From contig NW_003314324.1 in the NCBI RefSeq assembly GCF_000143415.4, positions 1,067,379 to 1,131,378 on the forward strand: a DNA stretch of 64,000 nt, given 5' to 3'. The DNA is from Selaginella moellendorffii. Taxonomy: Eukaryota; Plantae; Lycopodiophyta. Each line of letters begins with the position of its first letter. The stretch's first letter is position 1. The notes beneath the pieces were generated by a model. That model searched no databases. It saw nothing but the letters and a program-made list of their open reading frames with translations, and was not told the DNA's origin. Below are positions 2,011 through 9,660 of the stretch, one piece after another. The translations under genes and the position numbers were made by a program.

Positions 2011-2088
2011 GATCGCTTCCACGTGTCGTTCGTGTGGACTTTCGTTTGGGCTTTTGGCTGGCTGACGTAATATGGGTTAGGGCTGGTG

Positions 2089-3095
2089 ATGGAGCACGTA
2101 GATATCCTTTTGAAGCTTCCTGGGCCGAGTCTCTTGAGAGCCAGAGCTGTTTGCAAGGCTTGGAAAGAAGTAATTGATTCTCCATGGTTTTCAAACCGCT
2201 ACAGGGATCCATCGCCCTACATATTATTGCCATCGTCAAACCAAGAGGGCTTTCCCTTGTGTAACATATGCCACTTGGTTCTGGGTAAGTGGTTCAAGTT
2301 GGAATTTCCATCTACGTATATCCAGTCGGTCTCTCAGTCCGGGCTGGTGCTGGTCCGGGAAGGCAGAGTTTTTTGGGTGGGGAACCCATTCTTCAATAAG
2401 TGGAAACGGTATAGCTTAGAATTGCCATATGCGAAATTTGATCATGAGCTTGCAACTCTAGCGGATGATGAGCAGGGCTATCGAGTAGTATTTCGGGTGC
2501 GTAGGTTTATGCAAACAGCAGTCCTCTACTCTTGGAAGTCAGAGTGGCTCGTCACGGAGCAATGTAAGGAGATATCAAAATGGAGGATTTTGCGGATTTT
2601 GTCACATCCTCTTCCACTGTTTGTGGCAACATCATCCATTCCATTGGGTCCAAAAACAAAGTGGCACTACTAAGTTGTCGTGTAGACAATGGCAAGGTTC
2701 TTTCGCTCCGCTACTTGAAGCTGGGATCTGAAGTACTTGAAGGGCGTTTTAAGCTCTTTGGTTGGGATGGCAAGCTCTACTTGCTGGGAGAAAATGACAG
2801 TCACTTATTTGGACTCTTTGAAATAAGCGGAGAGAATGTAGTTCTGATAAGCTGGGCGCCAGAAAGCATTTCTACAAAATTTCCCTTCGTAAGGTCGGCA
2901 AGCATCTACAACAATACTATCTACTGCATTTTTCAAGTGAAGCTAGCAATGCTAGTAACTTACAACCTCAGTAAACATGGTTCGTGGCAGGTGGTACCAC
3001 TTCCAGAACCATTGCCTCCATGCATTGGAATCTTAAATATTGTGAAGTTTAGTTTAGACTTACCATTTGGGTTAGACTTGTGTAGTTCCTATTGA
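2089..3095 (+). pseudogene. F-box protein (F-box plus associated domain), split by a frameshift near 2500-2580
   Basis: N-terminal F-box motif ILLKLPGPSLLRARAVCKAWKEVIDSPWF. The plausible C-terminal half continues in another frame (ORF 2580-3095) with no intron-sized GT-AG gap. Confidence 0.65.
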
Positions 3096-3641: not shown

Positions 3642-5458
3642 CTACTCTCGCAGGTTTTGAGGGGTGAGGCTTTGCAGGAACTCTAGGAACTCTAGGACGT
3701 CCTGAGGCGAGTCAAGGCAGCAGAGTTCTCCGTCATCGTTTCTCCGAAACCAGATGCGTCTGATCACGTCCACTACATCTTGTATGACAACTGCAACAAA
3801 AAGAGAAAACCAAGCATAATTTATAGCATGCGCTGGGAGATTGATAATCACTCACGTCGCGTGCCTGCATCTGTAGCCTCTGTGTCTGCCAAAGAGAACG
3901 AATGTGAGGAGGGCTACAGAGACTTAACCATAAACGCTACCTTGGGACGCACCAGAGTCTTCCCCGTTGTTTATATCTGCACCTAAGATATAAGCATGCC
4001 ACATACTGAACGAAAAAAACCGAAACAAACCATTGCTCGATGTAGTCTCGGCAGGATCGATAGTTCCTTGGCGTGCTTGTTCGGACAAAGATGACTCTTC
4101 CACCCTGTTTATATCTGCAACTAGAACCTAAGTATGTCACGAACTCAACAAAACAAATCGAGACAAACCATTGTTCGCAGTAGTCTCGGGTGGATCGATA
4201 GTTCTGGACGCACCAGAGTCTTCCACTAAGTTTACATCTGCAAGTAAGAGATAAGGATGTCACATAATCAACAAGACAAACCATTGTTCGCAGTAGTCTC
4301 GGGTGGATCGATAGTTCTGGACGCACCAGAGTCTTCCACTGTGTTTACATCTGCAAGTAAGACATAAGCATGTCACATAATCAACGAGACAAACCGAAAC
4401 CGAGACAAACCATTGCTCGCAGTAGTCTCGGCTGGATTGATAGTTCTGGACGCACCAGAGTCTTCCACTGCAAGTAAGACATAAGCATGTCACAAACTCA
4501 ACGAGACAAACCGAAACCGAGACAAACCATTGCTCGCAGTAGTCTCGGGTGGATCGATAGTTCTGGACGCACCAGAGTCTTCCACTGTGTTTACATCTGC
4601 AAGTAAGACATAAGCATGTCACATACTCAACGAGACAAACCGAAACTAACCATTGCATGGCTTAGACTCGACAGGAACGATAGTTTCTACAAACAAACAA
4701 CAAGATGATTCAGAGAAGACGCGATGAACAAAAGCAAAGAGAAAAGAATACAGAAGAGAAATGGTATACCTCCATCGATGGTAGCTCTTGCAACCTCGCT
4801 AGAAGCTGGTGAATCCACGGACTCTGGACAAAAACAACACAACGCGTCAGGGATTCAAATAATCTATTCATGAAACCACAAACATCACATACCGGCTCCT
4901 TGATTTCCTTCCACCGTAAAAAGCATAAGCGAGAAATCGATCATCATACCTCCATCGGAGCTGGAGCTAGGTCCAGAAGACGACGCATGCGCATCACTTG
5001 ATCCAGAAGAGGCTAGAGGAGAATCTACACGATGCAAAGGCGTCAGATCGAGACGAGGAATCAGAAAACTCGCAAACATCACAGACCGGCAGCTCGATTT
5101 GCTTCCGCCAGATTCACACGAGAAGACGCATGATCTACACCTCCTGGACGAAAGATTACGAGATATTTCTTGCCATCGCGCGACTTACCAGCGCCATCGC
5201 TCTCGTCGGAAGTGTCTGCGGCAAGACATTTCCAAGATATGTGAGATACAAGCACAGATCGATGAGAATTTCACTGACCGGTGCGCGTCTGGCACAAATC
5301 GACCGAAGTGTTGCAGCTCCCGGCGCAATCGTTAGCGCTCCCTGCAAGAACACGAGAGATCTTCGAAAATCCAGACAAGGCGAGGCACTACCAATGCAGC
5401 GCCAAGCGAAGGAGAAGAGCAGCACAAGCGCAACCCAGGAAACCCTATAAGACGCCAT
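3642..5458 (-). CDS. Micro-exon gene: predicted secreted Ser/Thr/Asp/Glu-rich repeat protein, 16 exons, 318 aa
   Basis: Exons: 5458-5392, 5341-5279, 5215-5189, 5143-5087, 5024-4950, 4907-4893, 4823-4770, 4686-4651, 4596-4528, 4467-4411, 4350-4282, 4237-4169, 4114-4031, 3976-3941, 3885-3856, 3790-3642. All introns are GT-AG, and the spliced CDS is 957 nt with no internal stop. Exon 1 is signal-peptide-like (MASYRVSWVALVLLFSFAWRCIG). TATATAAA lies at about 5498-5491. Confidence 0.75.
3941..4686. repeat. Tandem array of about 6 units of 113-138 bp, each one intron plus one exon of the micro-exon gene
   Basis: Recurring cgcaccagagtcttccact...acatctgcaagtaagacataagcatgtcac...gacaaaccattg...agtagtctcgg...gatagttctgga. 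Confidence 0.95.
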
Positions 5459-5742
5459 TCTCTTTGCGACGTTCTTCAGCGGAAGGGTCCTTTATATAGC
5501 GCTGGGATGAGCGGGAAAATTCCGAAATCAAAATGATCCAGGAATATGCGTAATCGCCGACGTGGCATTTGGGATCTTCCACGAAACAGGAAGAATGAAT
5601 AGCTTTTCTACTCTTACCTCAGATAAATTCTTCGTCTACGCTTTCTCGCCAATGCCGGAGCTCGATCCTTCGTGCCCATCGCTTGCCGTTAAACCCTAAA
5701 ATAACAATAGGGGAGAGAGGAGATTAATTTTCGGGCTAGGTC

Positions 5743-6640
5743 ATGGCGCCCGCCAAGCCAGGCGATGCGGCATTCGCGAATGTGGATCATGTGGTGAGCT
5801 GCTAAATCTCGTCCTGGATCTAGAAATTCGTGGAGCGCTCACTGTGTCTTTGTGGTTTTTTCTCGATTCTGTCCATCCTGGATCAAGAATGCAGAGCTTT
5901 TCACTCTCACCTATGGCGCCATGGTCCGGCAGCTCCTCACGGACTTCGAAGACGTGGAGGAAGTGAACAAGCAGCTCGACACCATGTAAGCGCCCGAGCA
6001 TTTCTCTTTTTTCTTTTTTTTGTTTTCATCCCCTTCTTCGTTAGCTAGCATTGATAAGAATTTCTGTGTGTTTCTTTCTCTCTATCAGGGGATACAACAT
6101 TGGAATTCGCTTGATCGACGACTTTCTCTCCAAAGCCAACGTCACAAGGTGCTCAGAGTTTCGAGAGACCGCAGATGTCATTGCCAAGGTTCCCGGTGTT
6201 CCTCTCGAAACTTTGATCGCTGGACTCTAAATTTTTTTCCTTCGATCTCTTTCGTGGGCAGATTGGATTTAAGATGTTCTTGGGAGTGACTGCCACCGTC
6301 TCCAACTGGAACGCCGATTTCACCGAGTGCAGCTTGGTTCTCGATGACAATCCCCTGGTGGATTTTGTGGAGCTCCCGGAGACTTGCCAGGGCCTCTACT
6401 ACTGCAACGTCTTGTGTGGAGTGATCCGCGGAGCTCTAGAAATGGTAAACAAAAACTATGCTTTTCCTTTCCAGCCTCGCATTAAGTCTCTTCTTTCTTC
6501 GCTTGTTCTCCTCGCAGGTATCCATGAGAACCGAAGTAAAATGGGCGAGGGACATGCTTCGTGGGGACGATGCGTACGAATTGAGGCTAAAGCTCATCGA
6601 GCATGTCGCGGAAGAGTATCCGTACAAGGATGACGATTAA
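5743..6640 (+). CDS. BET3: TRAPP complex subunit 3 (Bet3), 5 exons
   Basis: NAELFTLTYGAMVRQLL, GYNIGIRLIDDFL, DNPLVDFVELP, YCNVLCGVIRGALEMV; ends EEYPYKDDD*. Confidence 0.95.
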
Positions 6641-6828
6641 ACATGCGTTCAATGTGTTTAATGGATCATGTGGTTTGATTTAAACAACTTGAATTAAGAA
6701 AAGCAAAGGAAAAACTATTTAATCAATCTTACACAAAATTTTGTTCCAACTCTTTCATGCAAATATAATCTTGACAATGATATGTAGTGTTTACCTTTAG
6801 CTAGGGCGAGTTATTAGGGTTCTTGGAA

Positions 6829-9660
6829 ATGGAGGACGAGGAGCGTCAAAACATGGAGCGCTTCAGCACGGAGGGCGATTTCGTGGATGGCGAGTGGATC
6901 GACGGTGAGTTCTACTACCGGAGCCGCCGGAAGAGGCGGGGGCAGACCAAGGAGGAGGCGCTCTACGGCTACCAGTCGTCAGGGTCGGATTCGGATGGAG
7001 GAGGAGGAGGAAGAAGGGGCAGGAAGAAGCGGCGGGGCGGGATAATCGTCGAGGACAAGTCGAGCAAGCCCGTGAATTTCGTGTCGGCGAGCGTCCAGGA
7101 CGTGGGCACTGAGAATCAGGCATCGTCGTCCTCTAGGAAAGAGATGGAGGAAGAAGAAGAAGAAGAAGAAGTGCCTGGCGCCGGGCTGGGATTTCGAGCT
7201 AGTAGCCGGGATAGAGGAAGCGATGAGGGCGATGAGCGAGGTGGTGTTGGGCTTGGCTTTCAAAGGGGAGGGATTGGTTTCCAGGCTGATGGCGATGAGC
7301 CTGGTGGTGCTGGAACTGGTTTCCAGAGGGGAGGAATTGGTTTCCAGGCTAGCAACGAAGAGGGCGATGATCAGGCTAGGAACGAAGATGGAGTTGGAGG
7401 ACGAGGTGGACTTGGTTTCCAGAGAGGAGGAATTGGTTTCCAGGCTAGAAGTGAAGATGGTGATGGACGAGGTGGCGTGGGGCTTGGTTTTCAAAGGGGA
7501 GGAATTGGCTTCCAGGCTAGAAACGTAGATGCCGATGGACGAGCTGGTGTGGGACTGGGTTTCCAAGGTAATGGGGCTGCGAGTGCCGGGGACGATGACG
7601 ATGGCGATCTGGAGCTGCCGAGTGCTCTGGGAAAGAAGATCCAAGAGAAAGTCCGGCAGAAGACAAAGAAGAAACCCGGAGGCCCAGCTTCTAGTAGCTC
7701 TGTTAAGTATGTCTGGCAGAAGCACACCAGCGAATTTACCAACAAGATGATGTCGAAGATGGGATTAACTGGTGGTACCGGCTTGGGAAAGAACTTGCAA
7801 GGCAGGGTGGCGGCGATTGAAGTGAAGTTGAGGCCCAAGAACATGGGGATGGGATACAATGACTTTCAGGAGGTGACGACGGGTCGTGATGATCCAGCAG
7901 CAGCGACAGAAAGCGAAGAAGTGGCCCATAGGTCGAGAGCAAACGAGCAGCTCTGGATGAAGAAGAACAAAAAGAAGGCAAAAACTTTCGTTTCAGCCGA
8001 GGAGCTCTTGTCACGGCAGCAGGGAAGAACAGTTGGCAAGGTTTTGGACATGACGGGGCCACAGGTGCGCGTTGTCACGGACATGAAGGACCTCAACGCC
8101 GAGAGAATGGTTGTCGAGGAGGACGACACTCCCATGCCAGAGCTCCAGCACAACTTGAAGCTCCTAGTGGATCTCGTTGCTTCGGACATCCAGCAGTACG
8201 ACTCCAGGCTCAGGCACGACAAGCAAACCATCGCCATCCTTGAGAAGGACCGGGACCGGCTGCAGAAGGAGCTGGAGCTCCAGAGCAGGAGCCTCGAGGT
8301 GATGCACTCGATCACTTCCGCCATCGAAGGTGTCCAGCAAGAAGCTGCGTCGCGGAGGCTAACTCTAGACGGCCTGCTCAAAACCTTCGCCAAGCTCAAG
8401 GCCGAGTTCCCGGAGGAGTACAAGCTCTGGAACCTTTCAGCTCTGGCGCTGTCTCACGCAGCACCGAGGATCACCTCTCACTTCCAAGCATGGCAGCCGC
8501 TCCTCCAGCCGTCCCGAGGTGTCGACGTTCTCCTTCCGTGGATGGAACTCCTCCAGGAGCAGGAGGAGGAGGCGATCTTCACCGAGGTGGACACTGCTCC
8601 GTATAGTCGCCTGGTGATGGAAACGGTGCTGCCGCATATCAACCGTGCGGTGATCAACTGGGAAGCTCGAGAGCCGGAGCCGCTCCTCCGGGTGCTCGAG
8701 GTGTGGGAGAAGCTCCTCCCAGCGTCGGTGTTCCAGAGCGTGCTGGACAGCTGCGTGATGCCCAAGCTGCGAGCTCAGGTGGAGGCGTGGGATCCATTGC
8801 AGGACACGGTCCCGGTTCACCACTGGGTGCATCCCTGGCTGCCGCTCCTCGGCTCGAGGATGGACCCGGTGTGCGATACCATCCGGTGGAAGCTAAACAG
8901 CGTGCTGCAAGCCTGGGATCCCAGTGACGTCTCGGCGTACTTGATGCTCTCGCCGTGGCACTCGGTGTTTGATGCGGCGAGCTGGGAGCAGCTCCTGGCA
9001 CGGAACATCGTCCCGAAGCTAAAGGTGGCGCTCGAGCAGCTGGAGATCAACCCGGCACAGCAGCGGCTGGAGCCTTTCTCGTGGGTGATGGCCTGGGCTC
9101 CGGTGATGCCGCTTCGTCTCATGATCCGGATGCTGGAGGAGAAGTTCTTCCCGAAGTGGCACCACGCGCTGTTCGCATGGCTGGGATCCAACCCGGACTT
9201 CGACGAGGTGACGCAGTGGTACCAGGGGTGGAAGTCGGTGCTGCCGGCGGAGCTGCTGGCCAACGATCGCGTAAGGTGGCAGCTCAACGGGGCGCTGGAG
9301 ATGATGAACCAGGCGGTGGAGGGGGCGCCGCTGGTGATGCGCGACGCGGAGCAGTGGCAGCAGCAGTTTGTGGAGAAGAAGTTCGCGGCGGTGGCGGTGG
9401 CGGTGGCGGAGGCGGAGGCGGAGATGAGCTTGAAGGAGGTGGTGGAGAGCTTCGCGCAGGAGAAGGACGTCCAGTTCTTGCCAAAGCCGGGGCGGCTGCA
9501 CCAGGGGCTCCAGGTTTATGGATTTGGATCGGTGAGTATCGCGGTGGACAATCACAAGCAGGCAGTCTTGGCTCAGGCTGGGCAGAAGTGGACGTCCGTG
9601 TCGCTGGAGCAGCTGCTCGAGATCCACCATGCTCGAAAGGGTGGCAAGTGGAACTCTTGA
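6829..9660 (+). CDS. TFIP11: Tuftelin-interacting protein 11 / STIP-like spliceosome disassembly factor (G-patch plus GCFC), intronless
   Basis: TKEEALYG N-terminal motif, G-patch (MMSKMG..GLGKNLQG), PMPELQHNLKLLV, GCFC Trp-rich repeats, C-terminal FLPKPGR..GLQVYGFG. Confidence 0.93.
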   Translation: MEDEERQNMERFSTEGDFVDGEWIDGEFYYRSRRKRRGQTKEEALYGYQSSGSDSDGGGGGRRGRKKRRGGIIVEDKSSKPVNFVSASVQDVGTENQASSSSRKEMEEEEEEEEVPGAGLGFRASSRDRGSDEGDERGGVGLGFQRGGIGFQADGDEPGGAGTGFQRGGIGFQASNEEGDDQARNEDGVGGRGGLGFQRGGIGFQARSEDGDGRGGVGLGFQRGGIGFQARNVDADGRAGVGLGFQGNGAASAGDDDDGDLELPSALGKKIQEKVRQKTKKKPGGPASSSSVKYVWQKHTSEFTNKMMSKMGLTGGTGLGKNLQGRVAAIEVKLRPKNMGMGYNDFQEVTTGRDDPAAATESEEVAHRSRANEQLWMKKNKKKAKTFVSAEELLSRQQGRTVGKVLDMTGPQVRVVTDMKDLNAERMVVEEDDTPMPELQHNLKLLVDLVASDIQQYDSRLRHDKQTIAILEKDRDRLQKELELQSRSLEVMHSITSAIEGVQQEAASRRLTLDGLLKTFAKLKAEFPEEYKLWNLSALALSHAAPRITSHFQAWQPLLQPSRGVDVLLPWMELLQEQEEEAIFTEVDTAPYSRLVMETVLPHINRAVINWEAREPEPLLRVLEVWEKLLPASVFQSVLDSCVMPKLRAQVEAWDPLQDTVPVHHWVHPWLPLLGSRMDPVCDTIRWKLNSVLQAWDPSDVSAYLMLSPWHSVFDAASWEQLLARNIVPKLKVALEQLEINPAQQRLEPFSWVMAWAPVMPLRLMIRMLEEKFFPKWHHALFAWLGSNPDFDEVTQWYQGWKSVLPAELLANDRVRWQLNGALEMMNQAVEGAPLVMRDAEQWQQQFVEKKFAAVAVAVAEAEAEMSLKEVVESFAQEKDVQFLPKPGRLHQGLQVYGFGSVSIAVDNHKQAVLAQAGQKWTSVSLEQLLEIHHARKGGKWNS

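Follow-up and report, generated by a model that had tools for sequence, protein, structure and literature searches.

Introduction

Only symmetric exons, mostly those of the 1-1 class, shuffle or duplicate in frame (Patthy's rule), as exemplified by the kringle IV-2 repeat of LPA, and the micro-exons of schistosome micro-exon genes (MEGs) sit between long introns. The symmetric exons of MEGs measure 6-36 bp and form most of the coding region, and these genes, which make up many families and are reported to be restricted to platyhelminths, vary through exon skipping (PMC3961193, PMC4350168) and evolve fast (PMC4350168). The definition of MEGs used here was taken from these two papers and that of exitrons from Marquez et al. 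2015 (PMC4484396) and PMC10985678. Symmetric exons have also been linked to disorder (PMC3632108). Intron retention is the main mode of alternative splicing in the lycophyte Selaginella moellendorffii, with 42% of events (PMC5310277), and it is regarded as the leading mode across non-animal eukaryotes in general (PMC6142364). Here, we analyse a window of 64,000 nucleotides (nt) of S. moellendorffii DNA (RefSeq assembly GCF_000143415.4, contig NW_003314324.1, positions 1,067,379 to 1,131,378 of the forward strand), in which the gene LOC9644991 occupies positions 3642-5458 on the minus strand. A first-pass annotation of the window had described this gene as a hidden micro-exon gene of the schistosome kind, encoding a secreted plant protein that could be diversified by skipping exons in any combination.

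It was found that LOC9644991 is probably an orphan gene in which the body of exon cassettes represents tolerated length variation in a fast-evolving spacer and not a selected combinatorial system. The body is built from symmetric phase 1-1 exons and very short introns (44-83 nt), partly by duplication of cassettes. Gain or loss of a unit and loss of a donor with read-through at the DNA level, as well as an exitron, an alternative donor, alternative acceptors and some cassette skipping at the RNA level, would be tolerated because each cassette is frame-neutral and disorder-encoding. Under all these changes, the C-terminal module would stay in frame.

Identity of the locus and search for relatives

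The DNA of LOC9644991 on scaffold GL377628.1 matched the window gene base for base, with SELMODRAFT_423843 as the corresponding JGI model. Since the locus is annotated by both JGI and RefSeq, its description as hidden was wrong. A second copy, LOC9658980, is present on GL377603.1 and is ~97.5% identical to LOC9644991. TRAPP/Bet3, TIP_N/G-patch, ACBP-kelch and F-box genes are neighbours common to both copies, revealing synteny. Because the assembly carries both haplotypes, the two loci were taken as alleles; LOC9658980 is designated haplotype A and LOC9644991, the window locus, haplotype B, with isoforms written as A-X# and B-X#.

Searching 1.84 billion representative proteins with HMMER for the last exon (a query of 48 amino acids, aa) revealed a single real match, XP_024539445.1, labelled 'uncharacterized protein LOC9658980 isoform X7' of Selaginella moellendorffii; two further matches were of low complexity and were discarded as chance. 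When XP_024539445.1 itself was used as query, matches were confined to the two S. moellendorffii loci, where nine models of LOC9658980 (X1-X7, X9 and X10) and, for LOC9644991, X1-X6 plus SELMODRAFT_423843 were recovered. Neither a homologue beyond the two loci nor transcript-derived fragments were found when the whole protein, its C-terminal third and its first 52 residues served as queries in a word-indexed protein search. Pfam searches with single exons (E-value up to 10) and whole isoforms (E-value up to 1) returned no family, and a sequence search of the PDB returned no relative. Within the window, no paralogue was detected by tblastn or via the intron motif of the tandem array described below, which occurs nowhere else in the window.

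A literature search found no paper naming the gene, the locus or its UniProt entry, and no entry for the locus turned up in the searched parts of the supplementary files on the S. moellendorffii transcriptome, to which the scaffold name could not be matched. The RefSeq label 'dentin sialophosphoprotein' of X2 and X3 was rejected, since it is not backed by homology and neither a Pfam family nor a PDB relative was found; the likeness consists in a Ser/Asp-rich, acidic composition of low complexity, and the name is compositional only. Judged from sequence, LOC9644991 is a real, annotated, uncharacterised and lineage-specific orphan gene.

Exon-intron structure

A depth-first search was performed with the exon lengths given by the first-pass annotation and GT-AG introns of 38-100 nt, taking the best acceptor at each step. 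The proposed model was recovered exactly, comprising 16 exons (Table 1), GT-AG borders throughout, exclusively phase 1 introns of 42-83 nt and a stop-free protein of 318 aa. The ATG lies at 5458, and the TAG stop codon occupies 3644-3642. The proposed introns 1-15 measure 50, 63, 45, 62, 42, 69, 83, 54, 60, 60, 44, 54, 54, 55 and 65 nt. Most acceptors are preceded by a pyrimidine-rich tract and end in cag or tag; the acceptor of the proposed 15-nt exon (ggtggaag immediately before the exon) is poor and has no pyrimidine tract.

For comparison with public annotation, 16 protein models of both haplotypes, seven of which belong to the window locus, were threaded exactly onto the loci. Fourteen of the 15 proposed introns are used by public models, and 13 of them by RefSeq models that retain both flanking exons. 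Not one of the 16 models, whichever the haplotype, splices the 42-nt intron (4908-4949), leaving the proposed 15-nt micro-exon without support; 4893-5024 is a single exon of 132 nt in all 16, its length still being a multiple of 3. The 45-nt intron (5144-5188) fared better, since it is spliced in X2 and the JGI model; in X1, X3, X4, X5 and X6 it is coding. X2 (332 aa) corresponds to the 318-aa protein plus 14 residues from the 42-nt segment. The peptides encoded by the two short segments (GMMIDFSLMLFTVE for the 42-nt and KSRDGKKYLVIFRPG for the 45-nt segment) are hydrophobic or basic, unlike the acidic body of the protein, so that splicing out both would be reasonable by composition, with the annotated splice backing only the 45-nt one.

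As annotated, the internal exons measure 63, 27, 57, 132, 54, 36, 69, 57, 69, 69, 84, 36 and 30 nt. All internal exons are multiples of 3 in the proposed (14 of 14) as well as in the annotated structure (13 of 13), and all are symmetric phase 1-1, which bears out the claim that any one of them can be removed in frame.

Tandem cassettes and uniform intron phase

Tandem Repeats Finder revealed a period of 113-117 nt over 4148-4646. The array consists of five full units of 113-138 nt and a last one of 90 nt, terminated by the half-unit exon 14. Similarity amounts to 74-96% among introns 8-13 and to 81-98% among exons 9-13, while exon 14 resembles the first half of the repeat unit (shuffle p ~0.001) and exon 8 its second half (shuffle p ~0.01). 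Repeat-derived sequence, earlier put at six exons, comprises introns 8-13, exons 9-13 and half units in exons 8 and 14. With homologous units arranged head-to-tail, symmetric exons and a copy-number difference between haplotypes, the locus carries a tandem exon+intron duplication array. We conclude that the six units arose through tandem duplication of an intron+exon cassette. This cassette is still minisatellite-like, as the haplotypes are set apart by one complete unit as well as by in-frame exon indels of 12 nt.

Exons 2-7 and 15 showed no similarity to the repeat unit beyond that of shuffled sequences and were, thus, counted as independent; older rounds of duplication as their source were rejected on the same ground. 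This leaves about seven independent symmetric exons, for which the chance of all being symmetric is, by our own rough estimate, ~(1/3)^7 or ~5e-4 per gene, a value that is unusual but not extreme genome-wide.

All introns but one lie directly behind the initial G of a codon (G/NN; 14 of 15), the 15 junction codons being those of Gly (three), Asp (eight), Glu (two), Val (one) and Leu (one). Two causes may have contributed to the uniform phase 1. Symmetric cassettes alone could duplicate or disappear without a frameshift, and a proto-splice-site effect combined with composition could have placed introns after the G of Gly, Asp, Glu and Val codons. The latter bias would follow from the commonest codons beginning with G, which suits the exon side of a donor.

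In other frames of the same strand, unspliced open reading frames (ORFs) of 129 and 132 aa with Cys-rich repeats such as CRCKHSGRLWCVQNYRSTRDYCEQWF run through window 3937-4326 and 4260-4658. They were rejected as the gene product and are most likely a by-product of the amplified stop-free unit, the length of which is a multiple of 3 in some copies.

Divergence between the haplotypes

Of 933 aligned exon sites, 24 (2.6%) differ between the haplotypes, as do 19 (2.3%) of 840 intron sites. The exonic changes comprise 19 nonsynonymous and five synonymous ones over 721 and 233 sites, respectively, giving a ratio of nonsynonymous to synonymous divergence (Ka/Ks) of ~1.2. By these counts, the sequence of the gene is weakly constrained or diversifying.

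Haplotype A has one additional cassette, 12 additional nt at the exon 10 acceptor and 16 additional nt in intron 11. It also carries a deletion of 44 nt, by which exon 4 loses 22 nt at its end and intron 4 another 22 nt at its start, and with them the donor. RefSeq reads the remaining intron in frame (LIPRLDLTPLHRV), resulting in an exon of 279 nt (L001:8244-8522, haplotype A) that stands against window 5025-5143. As read from the two alleles, this donor loss is a fresh case of an intron turning into coding sequence. Beyond the coding region, a 48-nt indel between the haplotypes was noted in the 3' untranslated region, a few bases past the stop (window ~3640; L001 just after 9902).

Exons diverging as fast as introns, a Ka/Ks of ~1, the exon 4 donor lost in one haplotype and the lack of a homologue found outside the two haplotype loci would also be expected of a decaying gene or a proto-gene that makes no functional protein and whose frame is open merely through an amplified stop-free unit; the other frames of the array, likewise open for ~130 codons, fit this explanation too. 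We consider it unlikely, however, because the frame is open across 16 exons only if these are spliced at good GT-AG sites, and because the frame, the ATG, the TATA-like box, the signal-peptide exon, the C-terminal exon and all splice sites but one are kept in both haplotypes. Moreover, the exonic indels of 12 nt are in frame, and the unique exons 1-7, 15 and 16 cannot owe their open frame to amplification.

Some of these observations also weigh against reading the body as tolerated length variation in a spacer. The Ka/Ks of ~1 derives from just 24 substitutions, a part of which fall into repeats and may reflect gene conversion or misalignment, and it is as compatible with positive selection as with neutrality. 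Both haplotypes keep an intact ORF, with every exonic indel in frame, which points to some constraint and would accord with a selected function of the variants. In addition, the evidence for expression, the main isoform and secretion consists of the RefSeq and JGI models and an inspection of the N-terminus.

Annotated isoforms and their reliability

RefSeq gives six in-frame isoforms for LOC9644991 and ten for LOC9658980, and every variant among the recovered models (six and nine from RefSeq, respectively, plus the JGI model) keeps the frame. At LOC9644991, exon 10 is skipped in X4 and exon 12 in X5 and X6; X5 additionally uses an acceptor 6 nt upstream, by which exon 13 begins at 4120. X3 makes use of an alternative donor with 5141 as the last exon base, reducing exon 4 to 3 nt, whereas exon 4 is skipped entirely in the JGI model, which also begins exon 14 at 3982 via an acceptor 6 nt upstream. 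At LOC9658980, a +12 and a +6 acceptor are combined in all four ways in X1-X4, the first repeat exon is missing from X5, and the alternative donor recurs in X6. X7 lacks the 84/90-nt exon, and X9 and X10 skip two repeat exons.

The ambiguity of each novel junction was assessed by determining the longest junction-spanning string that is also present in a full-length mRNA. The B-X6 skip is identical to the constitutive exon 12-13 junction over 59 nt on the upstream and 299 nt on the downstream side; similarity between exons 11 and 12 is 97%, and reads need to extend >59 nt upstream of the junction to separate them. The junction string of B-X4 (75 nt upstream, 37 nt downstream) is found verbatim in the full-length mRNA of haplotype A and that of A-X5 (131 nt upstream, 41 nt downstream) in the full-length mRNA of haplotype B. 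Three repeat-exon skips, one of them common to two isoforms, are, hence, indistinguishable from constitutive or other-haplotype junctions over 59-131 nt, and the B-X6, B-X4 and A-X5 skips could be the product of ambiguous or cross-haplotype alignment of short reads. Gnomon, furthermore, combines independent events and thereby multiplies isoforms.

From these data, it might be supposed that all annotated cassette skips are artefacts of ambiguous reads, cross-haplotype mapping or template switching by reverse transcriptase and that the gene makes one or two products differing at the exitron. The near-identity of exons 11 and 12, the verbatim occurrence of the B-X4 and A-X5 strings in the other haplotype and the inclusion of both haplotypes in the assembly speak for this explanation. 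However, sequence is unique and unambiguous around the exitron, the alternative donor (B-X3, A-X6), the +6 acceptors and the A-X7 skip, reads reaching >21 nt upstream of the junction can tell the A-X9 and A-X10 skips apart, and the JGI model lacks exon 4 independently. An artefactual origin of all skips is, therefore, a serious possibility but a doubtful one. Irrespective of this, repeat exons in a two-haplotype assembly can inflate annotated isoform counts, which calls for caution among users of the RefSeq isoforms of this genome.

Table 1. Positions in the window of the exons and other elements of LOC9644991. Exon numbers are those of the 16-exon model.
Feature	Position	Strand	Remarks
TATA-like box	5491..5498	-	TATATAAA; 33-40 nt upstream of ATG
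Exon 1	5392..5458	-	67 nt; ATG and signal-peptide-like MASYRVSWVALVLLFSFAWRCI-G; ends in phase 1; in 7 of 7 models of the locus
Exon 2	5279..5341	-	63 nt; C-x3-C-x6-C; one N-glycosylation sequon (NTS)
Exon 3	5189..5215	-	27 nt; separate in X2 and JGI model
Exitron-like intron	5144..5188	-	45 nt, in frame, stop-free; retained peptide KSRDGKKYLVIFRPG basic and hydrophobic
Exon 4	5087..5143	-	57 nt; absent from JGI model; normal donor deleted in haplotype A
Annotated 132-nt exon	4893..5024	-	Proposed exon 5 (75 nt) + 42-nt segment 4908-4949 + 15-nt segment 4893-4907
Exon 5 (proposed)	4950..5024	-	75 nt
Exon 6 (proposed)	4893..4907	-	15 nt
Exon 7	4770..4823	-	54 nt
Exon 8	4651..4686	-	36 nt; like second half of repeat unit (TIVPVESKPCND vs TIDPPETTASND)
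Tandem array	3941..4650	-	Six intron+exon units: introns 8-13 and exons 9-14
Array exons 9-14	4528-4596, 4411-4467, 4282-4350, 4169-4237, 4031-4114, 3941-3976	-	
Exon 13 extension	4115..4120	-	+6 exon bases via alternative acceptor in X5
Exon 15	3856..3885	-	30 nt
Exon 16	3642..3790	-	149 nt including TAG; sole non-repetitive, non-acidic module; two predicted helices flank RRNDDGELCCLD

Predicted protein

The product is probably a secreted, acidic, disordered repeat protein of ~320-350 aa with a putative signal peptide. Several features that had been read from the DNA earlier were seen again. By inspection, the N-terminus encoded by exon 1 is signal-peptide-like: R5 is charged, a hydrophobic core of 12 residues spans W8-W19, and small residues occupy positions -3/-1 of the likely cleavage site (C-I-G before S). 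Exon 2 carries the three cysteines (Table 1), and the body is acidic and rich in Ser and Thr, as reflected by 57 D+E versus 17 K+R in the mature protein of 295 residues. The terminal exon is indeed distinct from the body in being neither repetitive nor acidic.

Modelling of X2 (332 aa) with AlphaFold 2 without an alignment gave a mean predicted local distance difference test score of 42.9, with 272 of the 332 residues below 50. Helices appeared only at the N-terminus and at 276-297 and 312-323, the latter two with low confidence. The long body is predicted to be disordered, and the 48-aa C-terminal module is predicted to form a helix-loop-helix with a Cys-Cys pair. An EF-hand as the identity of this helix-loop-helix (RRNDDGELCCLD) found no support, since position 1 of the loop is Arg and not Asp as in the canonical 12-residue loop, and there was no Pfam match.

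Promoter region and flanking genes

The gene shares a divergent promoter region of ~285 nt (5459-5743) with the TRAPP/Bet3 gene, which lies on the plus strand with its ATG near 5744. The ~120 nt next to the ATG of the orphan gene are nearly invariant between the haplotypes, and indels lie farther upstream.

On the plus strand, window 6823-9660 contains a single ORF of 945 aa resembling a G-patch protein of the TFIP11/STIP type. Its allelic product matches TIP_N, G-patch and GCFC, and the N-terminal third of the ORF contains about five copies of a GLGFQRGGIGFQA-type repeat. At window 2086-3095, two overlapping plus-strand ORFs of 195 and 171 aa resemble portions of a gene of the F-box/kelch type, and the allelic locus has a product of 335 aa with faint F-box matches.

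Comparison with described systems

Likeness to MEGs lies in the signal-peptide-like first exon and the distinct terminal exon enclosing symmetric exons, any of which can be skipped in frame, in the fast evolution of the protein and in the annotation of several in-frame transcript variants. The RefSeq and JGI models do contain in-frame skips, several of them ambiguous in repeats. Regarding exon size, the locus departs from MEGs, as only four of the 13 annotated internal exons, or 129 of 783 nt, are ≤36 nt, most exons measuring 54-132 nt. It is, moreover, a single plant locus without sequence relatives, as compared with many platyhelminth families, and its introns of 44-83 nt contrast with the long introns of MEGs. 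While exon symmetry agrees with MEGs, exon size and family membership do not, and the assignment to the schistosome kind was given up because the exons are mostly too large and there is no MEG family.

A plant analogue of MEGs could nonetheless be envisaged, in which selected combinatorial skipping yields secreted variants, for instance at a microbe or cell-wall interface. The symmetry of all internal exons, the signal-peptide-like exon 1, the six and ten in-frame RefSeq isoforms and the unambiguous events (the A-X7, A-X9 and A-X10 skips and the alternative donor of B-X3 and A-X6) are in line with it, and a Ka/Ks of ~1.2 would match the fast evolution of schistosome MEGs (PMC4350168). It is set back by exons mostly outside the 6-36 nt range (PMC3961193), by the restriction to one locus without a family, by the B-X4, B-X6 and A-X5 skips, which short reads could create from shared sequence, and by the inflation of isoform number by Gnomon. 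Frequent regulated exon skipping is also less likely because the introns are tiny and intron retention prevails (PMC5310277, PMC6142364). We regard such an analogue as improbable. The earlier idea of diversification by in-frame skipping, thus, stands as far as frame-neutral cassettes and annotated in-frame variants are concerned, but an adaptive combinatorial system at the locus is unproven and quite unlikely, with neither the Ka/Ks of ~1 nor the tiny introns giving a sign of it. Were the variants real and regulated, the locus would be a plant case of the cassette-skipping diversification that the literature consulted describes for flatworm MEGs alone (PMC4350168).

More speculatively, the very short introns of Selaginella might allow cassettes of ~110-140 nt to act as spliced minisatellites in a genome-wide class of secreted or membrane orphans, with frame-neutral cassettes that would differ from allele to allele through unequal crossing-over and from transcript to transcript through regulated skipping. 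We hold out little expectation for such a class, which would be a plant counterpart to the flatworm micro-exon-gene strategy of extracellular protein diversification.

The locus clearly illustrates, on a small scale, how a symmetric exon and a very short intron, duplicated in tandem, build and resize a disordered, probably extracellular protein. It also illustrates the passage of intron into coding sequence, by way of an exitron and by donor loss with in-frame read-through in one haplotype. Segment 5144-5188 has the properties of an exitron, being bordered by GT-AG, a multiple of 3 in length, stop-free and annotated in both states; a difference is that both states are annotated for this 45-nt segment only, the 42-nt candidate being just retained. 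With arrays arising by tandem exon+intron duplication, the locus has in common the exon+intron unit, symmetric 1-1 exons, a copy-number difference between alleles and a disordered region of extracellular type. It differs in its tiny unit (113-138 nt), the plant lineage and the orphan nature of the protein; the unit is tiny because Selaginella introns are very short, so that the array acts like a spliced minisatellite. The locus is an example of a known mode of gene growth, not a proven diversification system, and its nearest known counterparts are exitrons and disorder-encoding 1-1 cassettes that were duplicated in tandem as exon+intron units.

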